Shown piece by piece: positions 59,903-60,170 of a stretch of 64,000 nt of DNA. Each line of letters begins with the position of its first letter. Position 1 is the stretch's first letter. The notes beneath the pieces were generated by a model. The model was not told where the DNA came from, did no database searches, and saw only the letters and a program-made list of their open reading frames with translations. The position numbers were made by a program, and so were the translations under genes. Source of the stretch: Selaginella moellendorffii (lineage: Eukaryota; Plantae; Lycopodiophyta); assembly GCF_000143415.4 (NCBI RefSeq), contig NW_003314401.1, positions 124,001 through 188,000 on the forward strand. Direction: 5' to 3'.

Positions 59903-59968
59903 GCGCAGCGGAAGCGTGGTGGGCCCATAACCCACAGGTCCCAGGATCAAAACCTGGCTCCAATACCA
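59903..59968 (+). pseudogene. Retro-copied initiator tRNA-Met (positions 10 to CCA end)
   Basis: gcgcagcggaagcgtggtgggccCATaacccacaggtcccaggatcaaaacctggctccaataCCA matches plant tRNA-iMet; lacks first 9 nt; encodes CCA; abuts LTR. Confidence 0.93.
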
Positions 59969-60170
59969 AATTGTAAACTCCTGAATTTGGACTTCCCAGG
60001 AGGTCACCCAGCCCAGTACTATTCAAACCCAAGGACGCTTAACTCCAACTATCCCAAGACCCTTAACCGATTGGAAAAGGGGGTGCACTCTTGTTCATGG
60101 GCCCTTTCCCTCTATATTTGAACCCCATGGATCGTCTCTCGAGTCGTTCCCTTTGGTTGCTTACAACATT

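Follow-up and report, generated by a model that had tools for sequence, protein, structure and literature searches.

The window, i.e., the whole 64,000-nucleotide stretch of Selaginella moellendorffii DNA analyzed here, holds most of an initiator tRNA-Met as DNA directly beside a long terminal repeat (LTR), which raises the question of what this stretch is and by which route a primer tRNA could have been written into a genome. The original prediction described 66 nt of mature tRNA-iMet with CCA, 3 nt from the LTR and starting at tRNA G10, and this description was borne out by the Rfam match, the fold, and the initiator features. The Rfam tRNA model aligned with its positions 10-63 on 59903-59957 (+) at 29.8 bits, against a gathering score of 29; beyond this match, the 3' acceptor strand, the discriminator A, and the CCA were read by eye up to 59968. 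Folding of the stretch yields the D, anticodon, and T hairpins. Its anticodon is CAU, its anticodon stem ends at the foot in three G:C pairs, and A20, A54, and A60 are present; three such G:C pairs together with these three adenines are the signature of eukaryotic initiator tRNAs. Alignment with three stretches from public collections (L001-L003) agreed with this identity. The window copy is identical to the initiator-tRNA-derived stretches of L002 and L003 at 47/50 and 49/50 positions, respectively, and has, relative to L001-L003, three transitions in 66 nt, two of the three being at methylation-prone sites. The preceding bases ACC (59900-59902) mismatch tRNA positions 7-9, as deduced from acceptor-stem pairing and the near-universal U8, and the copy therefore begins at position 10. 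The span first proposed for the tRNA, 59903-59971, was upheld as far as 59968; its last 3 nt are the spacer AAT (59969-59971, +) between the CCA and the LTR, and the same spacer lies beside another Cassandra LTR in L001. The stretch 59903-59968 (+) is a DNA copy of the mature primer tRNA, positions 10-76 including CCA, and is continuous via this spacer with the U5 of a Cassandra LTR.

Neither a tRNA gene nor a tRNA-derived SINE fits this stretch. A eukaryotic tRNA gene contains both acceptor strands and does not encode the CCA, whereas at 59903-59968 positions 1-9 are absent and the CCA is present. ARAGORN called no tRNA gene in the whole window, as is expected because the copy lacks positions 1-9. 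Against a SINE, the copy lacks the first nine bases and has an intact 3' end that includes CCA, and no other copy was found in the window. The copy stands beside the LTR in the exact register and orientation of a primer site; in the element sense (minus strand) it is the complement of the tRNA at the primer-site position. Chance is not a realistic source of the tRNA match.

Public collections were searched with a 29-nt pattern made up of the window T arm, the published primer site, and CCA. Two matches (L001 and L002) were obtained among 241 million metagenome records, and no further CCA-bearing copies were found with this pattern in the prokaryote-genome and viral collections. In L001, the copy spans from about position 39 (35-39 being ambiguous) to CCA and is followed by AAT and an LTR with a 5S-like core, so that this is another Cassandra. 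It is a human gut metagenome contig, which we do not regard as human DNA: the relevant part is of plant type, and the remainder looks bacterial. Along L001:1-1010, bacterial-looking sequence at twofold coverage follows the Cassandra-like LTR piece, and the assembly is probably chimeric. In L002, the copy extends from about position 25-27 (22-27 being ambiguous) to CCA and is followed by ACT and a different LTR. Scans for a plant initiator tRNA gene as a comparator yielded a partial sequence only: L003:384-436, on a 680-bp scaffold of a bacterial genome assembly, is an initiator-tRNA-like fragment of positions 14-63 without acceptor strands or CCA; this scaffold is probably eukaryotic contamination.

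Cassandra-Type LTRs

The LTR next to the tRNA copy is the outer 5' LTR of an insertion (59972-60165, -; TG..CA ends), and the 3' LTR of the same insertion occupies 55845-56038 (-). Both are 194 bp in length, and they are 98.5% identical, differing by three transitions. Their 5S-like cores, at 59975-60062 and 55848-55935, scored 35 bits (E 1.7e-4) and 33.8 bits, respectively, with the Rfam 5S model, both under the model's gathering score (38) and at E about 1e-4. Both LTRs fit the published Cassandra motif of box A, 18 nt, and box C; the spacing is exact, and each box has a single mismatch. The repeat pair, the 5S matches, and the box motif identify the LTRs as those of a Cassandra-type miniature retrotransposon, with the minus strand as the element sense.

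The element shares with Cassandra a 5S-like core in each LTR whose boxes A and C are 18 nt apart, a primer site for initiator Met, TG..CA ends, and a basic unit of corresponding size (PMC7215508, PMC10853983). The basic unit implied by the window is 194 + 205 + 194 = 593 bp, with ~6 nt between the 5S end and the primer site. Fern Cassandras are 565-606 bp long, with LTRs of 187-208, internal domains of 190-193, and a 5S end 8 nt from the primer site (PMC7215508, PMC10853983), and the window element matches fern rather than angiosperm Cassandras in size. The Cassandras of the published table have a 12-nt primer site and lack coding remnants (PMC7215508, PMC10853983). Unlike these, the window copy contains a 66-nt tRNA copy, telomere-type repeats, a foreign pol fragment, and a duplicated LTR end; at 4321 bp, and with remnants of reverse transcriptase (RT), RNase H, integrase, and chromodomain, it falls outside the small, non-coding format (about 0.56-0.95 kb) of Cassandra. 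Its purine-rich stretch stops 2 nt short of the 3' LTR and resembles published Cassandra motifs in style only. A third, decayed Cassandra-type copy, with the 5S core deleted and the internal domain partly duplicated, runs off the window at 63620-64000 (-); it is AT-decayed, has a 121-nt internal duplication, and is cut by the window end before its primer site.

Structure of the 4321-bp Insertion

The two LTRs delimit one insertion of 4321 bp (55845-60165) inside the RT gene of a host chromovirus, with the 5-bp target-site duplication ACATT on its left (55840-55844) and right (60166-60170); guide proteins abut exactly across 55845-60165. In the element sense, the insertion opens with, in turn, the 5' LTR, the spacer, the tRNA complement, three orphan bases, telomere-type repeats, and a pol fragment, and continues with an unassigned stretch of ~0.5 kb, a 12-mer array, a 23-nt LTR end, a 2-nt spacer, a short primer binding site (PBS), the internal domain, and the 3' LTR.

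The orphan bases ACC (59900-59902, +), between the telomere-type repeat and tRNA position 10, belong neither to the phase of the repeat nor to the inferred tRNA positions 7-9. The telomere-type array (59867-59899, +) consists of 4.7 perfect units of the plant-type repeat TTTAGGG, with the G-strand on the plus strand and 100% matches in TRF; 0.01 chance matches are expected for it. The sole other telomere-like match in the window, at 47564-47577 (-), has two units with one mismatch. The foreign chromovirus pol fragment (57118-59865, -) was recognized with Pfam as RT, RNase H, integrase, and chromodomain, beginning at the start of RT and lacking gag, protease, and the 5' part. Between its chromodomain end and the 12-mer array, 56601-57117 (-) had no Pfam or Rfam match. 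Two tRNA T-arm-like motifs were seen downstream of the interior chromodomain (56860-56990, -), with no Rfam family match; Rfam matches to TUG1_3 and MIR6459 were rejected as chance, being far under the gathering scores.

The tandem array of 12-nt units (56268-56600), about 25 units that are open in several frames, lies between the dead pol fragment and an isolated LTR piece, which its first unit overlaps by 6-8 nt of microhomology. This piece (56244-56267, -) is a second copy of the last 23 LTR nt, has a 1-nt insertion, and lies 2 nt from the short PBS. LTR position 6 is G in both the piece and the 3' LTR and A in the outer 5' LTR. The Cassandra internal domain (56039-56229, -), with a purine-rich tract adjoining the 3' LTR, is 73-77% identical to the third copy at 63746-63974. 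No second copy of any insertion junction was found in the window, and our reading of these junctions rests on one locus.

Primer Binding Sites

The insertion has an ordinary short PBS at 56230-56241 (-), which matches the published Cassandra PBS at 11/12 positions, compared with 10/12 for the first 12 nt of the long copy. The complementarity of the long copy to the tRNA runs over 66 nt, to position 10, beyond the 8-18 nt, to position 58 at most, of an ordinary PBS. At three other initiator-Met sites in the window, the inner Cassandra site included, the tRNA match covers 11-13 nt and then diverges; with these sites and the 12 nt of published Cassandras, the expectation that the long match is not a family norm was confirmed. 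The notion that the copy is the primer site of an ordinary element had to be given up, as a short PBS and a duplicated LTR end lie 3.7 kb off in the same insertion, and the long copy itself borders three orphan bases, beyond which come the telomere-type array and 3.6 kb of dead sequence of foreign origin. The inner and outer U5-spacer-PBS regions differ at about 6/38 positions. The tRNA copy is without function and a rare by-product, not a working part; the short PBS (56230-56241) is the true primer site.

Three independent initiator-Met primer sites, at 39294-39305 (+), 51960-51971 (+), and 59957-59968 (-), have in common a C-to-T change at base 7, in a CAG context; a methylated site that was deaminated repeatedly could be behind it, as could a host isodecoder carrying A70. 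The internal domain was rejected as an old, decayed long primer site, its local alignment score equaling the shuffle mean. At 56040-56057 (-), 2 nt from the 3' LTR, a same-sense match to initiator tRNA positions 12-29 was observed at 17/18 positions, and its score was equaled in 2/2000 shuffles. On minus-strand cDNA, a 5' tRNA fragment would find a site here, its 3' end directed into the LTR, at the place of plus-strand priming. Some published Malpighiales Cassandra purine tracts resemble tRNA positions 12-29, too. Parts of the initiator tRNA other than the 3' end also take part in the replication of copia and Ty5, by internal or half-tRNA priming, and of Ty3, by a bipartite primer site (PMC5371799). 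The sites of copia, Ty5, and Ty3 lie on the element RNA as complements of the tRNA, whereas 56040-56057 has the same sense as the tRNA.

Host Chromovirus and Interior pol Fragment

The host element (52877-62738, +) is a Ty3/gypsy chromovirus with a chromodomain, LTRs at 52877-53211 and 62350-62738, and the duplication CTACC. Its pol is interrupted solely by the 4321-bp insertion; there are otherwise no stops or frameshifts, and the guide proteins lose no residue across the insertion. Despite this open pol, the LTRs of the host have 54 alignment gaps from indels in addition to substitutions and are 85% identical over 389 aligned columns. The order RT, RNase H, integrase, and chromodomain was found with Pfam in both the host element and the broken interior fragment.

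The interior pol fragment contains at least two frameshifts and 5-6 in-frame stops. It shares 35-56% amino acid identity with the host element and 63% with its best database relative; the nearest proteins in a large protein collection are 58-63% identical and derive mostly from environmental contigs. No relative of the interior DNA, as its source, was found elsewhere in the window. The host pol is older than its insertion, yet it has no breaks compared with at least seven in the interior fragment, and the latter was therefore dead on arrival. The interior pol was rejected as an active Cassandra helper on the same comparison. An origin of the interior DNA from a decayed genomic locus, as DNA or as a transcript, is thus favored over a co-packaged active helper genome. 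With three transitions per 66 nt compared with about 0.8% per LTR copy, there are hints that the tRNA copy may be older than the LTR pair.

Elsewhere in the window, the direct-repeat pairs 38157-39075/44272-45101, 10404-12189/27148-28419, and 23325-24390/24762-26024 are 84-94% identical, which suggests other LTR elements and local tandem duplication. The left 20 kb is unusually rich in GC, at 52-59%, whereas most of the region from 20 to 54 kb has 29-45%.

Origin of the tRNA Copy

Continuity of tRNA, spacer, and U5 is found only in tRNA-primed minus-strand cDNA, and that intermediate was therefore the template. The proposal that DNA synthesis had run into the primer far beyond its usual stop was borne out by the CCA-bearing copy, which is continuous with the spacer and U5. 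We consider it probable that a reverse-transcription intermediate, with its attached primer tRNA copied into DNA, was fixed at a repair-type or template-switch junction. A polymerase on the minus-strand cDNA intermediate would have run through the attached primer to position 10; it may have been the RT borrowed by the element, engaged in plus-strand strong-stop synthesis, or else a repair polymerase of the host that elongated a broken end of the LTR. In plant particles, strong-stop intermediates are abundant (PMC7197481). The transfer cannot be completed by plus strands that reach beyond tRNA position 54 (PMC8599865), and such an over-long product, unable to finish the second strand transfer, would survive only when joined to other DNA.

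The junctions have the look of break repair, and four elements would account for the present structure. The LTR end may have been joined to the 12-mer array through microhomology, and about 3.6 kb may have been copied from an already dead chromovirus locus. The 4.7 telomerase-type repeats have the polarity of a healed 3' end; telomerase, as the polarity alone suggests, would have extended the 3' end of the strand bearing the antisense pol fragment; three untemplated bases and then the tRNA copy would complete the chain. The repair may have been in place, at a point in the 5' LTR that lies 23 nt from the inner end of this LTR, in what was then an ordinary Cassandra insertion; alternatively, the chimera may have formed at a progenitor locus and been copied later as a unit between two LTRs. 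The G at LTR position 6 in both the isolated piece and the 3' LTR would slightly favor repair in place, and the three transitions of the tRNA copy, with the inner/outer differences at ~6/38 positions, would slightly favor the progenitor locus; neither is significant.

Several known systems come close. As in the read-through past m1A58 by a human retrovirus in methyltransferase-mutant cells (PMC8599865), synthesis entered the primer body and gave a product that mismatches the other strand after transfer; unlike that laboratory dead-end product, the present copy is a germline fossil in a plant, reaches position 10, and was rescued by joining. Retroelement cDNA is captured as filler at chromosome breaks in vertebrates, where, as here, an RT product is joined to unrelated DNA with short or absent homology (PMC4516963); in contrast to that system, the primer tRNA copy is part of what was captured here, and the captured piece sits within a resident element of its own family. 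Short interstitial telomeric arrays mark break repair in vertebrates, as backed by empty orthologous sites, and they share with the window array a few perfect units between unrelated flanks and a G-strand running 5'->3' toward the junction (PMC2246262, PMC8537989). Unlike these vertebrate arrays, the present one is of the plant-type heptamer and was read from this one locus. By analogy, the perfect short telomere-type array, unique in the window, may be regarded as a mark of break repair. Some observations count against the preferred reading. It draws on one locus, with no second copy of any junction in the window. A length of 3.6 kb is long for plant filler DNA and speaks against break repair, and the excess transitions of the tRNA copy are a hint in the same direction, though two of the three are at methylation-prone sites.

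The End of the Copy and Primer Modification

The original prediction explained the copy by one ordinary cycle, in which the plus strand passed through an m1A58-less or bypassed primer and halted at m1G9, so that the end records the modification state of the primer. We regard this as possible and yet rather doubtful. The copy does end exactly at position 10, one base short of the presumed G9, and the three untemplated bases past the end would suit an enzyme stalled at a block; m1G9 is documented on the initiator tRNA of human cells. The end is at the same time a recombination junction with foreign DNA, which trimming, a template switch, or polymerase fall-off would explain equally well, and the proposed stop is in that sense compatible with the end and not singled out by it. 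The m1G9 modification of initiator tRNA is documented for human, and by mention for yeast, only, and t6A37 for animals; yeasts degrade initiator tRNA lacking m1A58, which is unstable.

Bypass of such tRNA methylations usually leaves copying errors, and position 26 of eukaryotic initiator tRNA is methylated. The copy has no mismatch at positions 58 or 26. For the claim of an m1A58-lacking or bypassed primer, these clean positions agree no worse with a hypomodified primer than with bypass, and the absence of misincorporation weakens the assumption that G9 was methylated. The tRNA copy alone cannot show which modification stopped the enzyme.

The two public copies end near 39 and 25-27, close to t6A37 and position 26, so that three end points (10, about 27, and about 38-39) lie near heavily modified initiator positions; this is suggestive, with n=3 and the ends of L001 and L002 uncertain by 3-5 bases. 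A generalization would be that LTR-adjacent primer-tRNA copies are natural stop-maps, with 5' ends that accumulate one base ahead of those modifications of the cytosolic initiator tRNA that act as hard stops; at present, we hold this to be unlikely. Cassandra, which borrows a foreign RT, may be especially prone to primer read-through.

Alternative Origins

A fixed reverse-transcription intermediate has to be weighed against a single aberrant cycle within a particle, in which an over-long plus strand switched to telomere-repeat RNA, to co-packaged chromovirus nucleic acid, and to a second Cassandra minus strand before the chimera was integrated. The terminal LTRs and the 5-bp duplication show that integrase handled the ends, the array/LTR join has microhomology, and the inner and outer U5-spacer-PBS regions differ at about 6/38 positions, as two co-packaged parents would. 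Nevertheless, such a cycle is improbable: the pol fragment was already broken and is missing the 5' region, where packaging signals are normally found, which makes it a poor helper candidate; the repeat strand in the element sense is C-rich and needs a G-rich template; and several successive non-homologous switches are needed, which is possible but strained.

An assembly artefact, in which chimeric reads or a collapsed repeat made the telomere/tRNA junction, is very improbable. The window is repeat-rich, and the comparison contig L001 itself looks chimeric, but the outer flanks fit to the base, with the duplication and a continuous host reading frame, and the join of tRNA, spacer, and LTR has the biologically expected form. 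That a tRNA pseudogene, a tRNA-derived SINE, or a gene fragment lies beside the LTR by chance is hardly conceivable: tRNA-like fragments without LTR context do exist (L003), but here the DNA itself encodes the CCA, and the stretch has precisely the register, spacer length, and orientation of a primer site. It also lacks its first nine bases, in contrast to SINEs, which retain the 5' promoter half, and the AAT-plus-LTR arrangement recurs in L001.

Significance of the Locus

The ingredients of this locus are all known, namely Cassandra, primer read-through, cDNA capture, and interstitial telomeric repeats. Their combination and a heritable 66-nt primer copy in a plant element are undescribed in the literature searched; the search gave no earlier report of long primer-tRNA copies in plant elements, which is not proof of absence. 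If the stop-map generalization is true, a census across plant genomes would read out ancient primer modification states, and if the ends are confirmed at modified bases, such copies would offer a sequence-only view of primer modification in species without tRNA chemistry, which is now a hypothesis. At the bench, primer read-through is a recognized dead end of reverse transcription; heritable cases of it are rare. The locus shows a route by which a read-through product enters the genome, i.e., by stitching to other DNA, and three signs of patchwork repair coincide in it: the capture of a reverse-transcription intermediate, a repeat of the telomerase type, and extensive sequence copied from a dead element.
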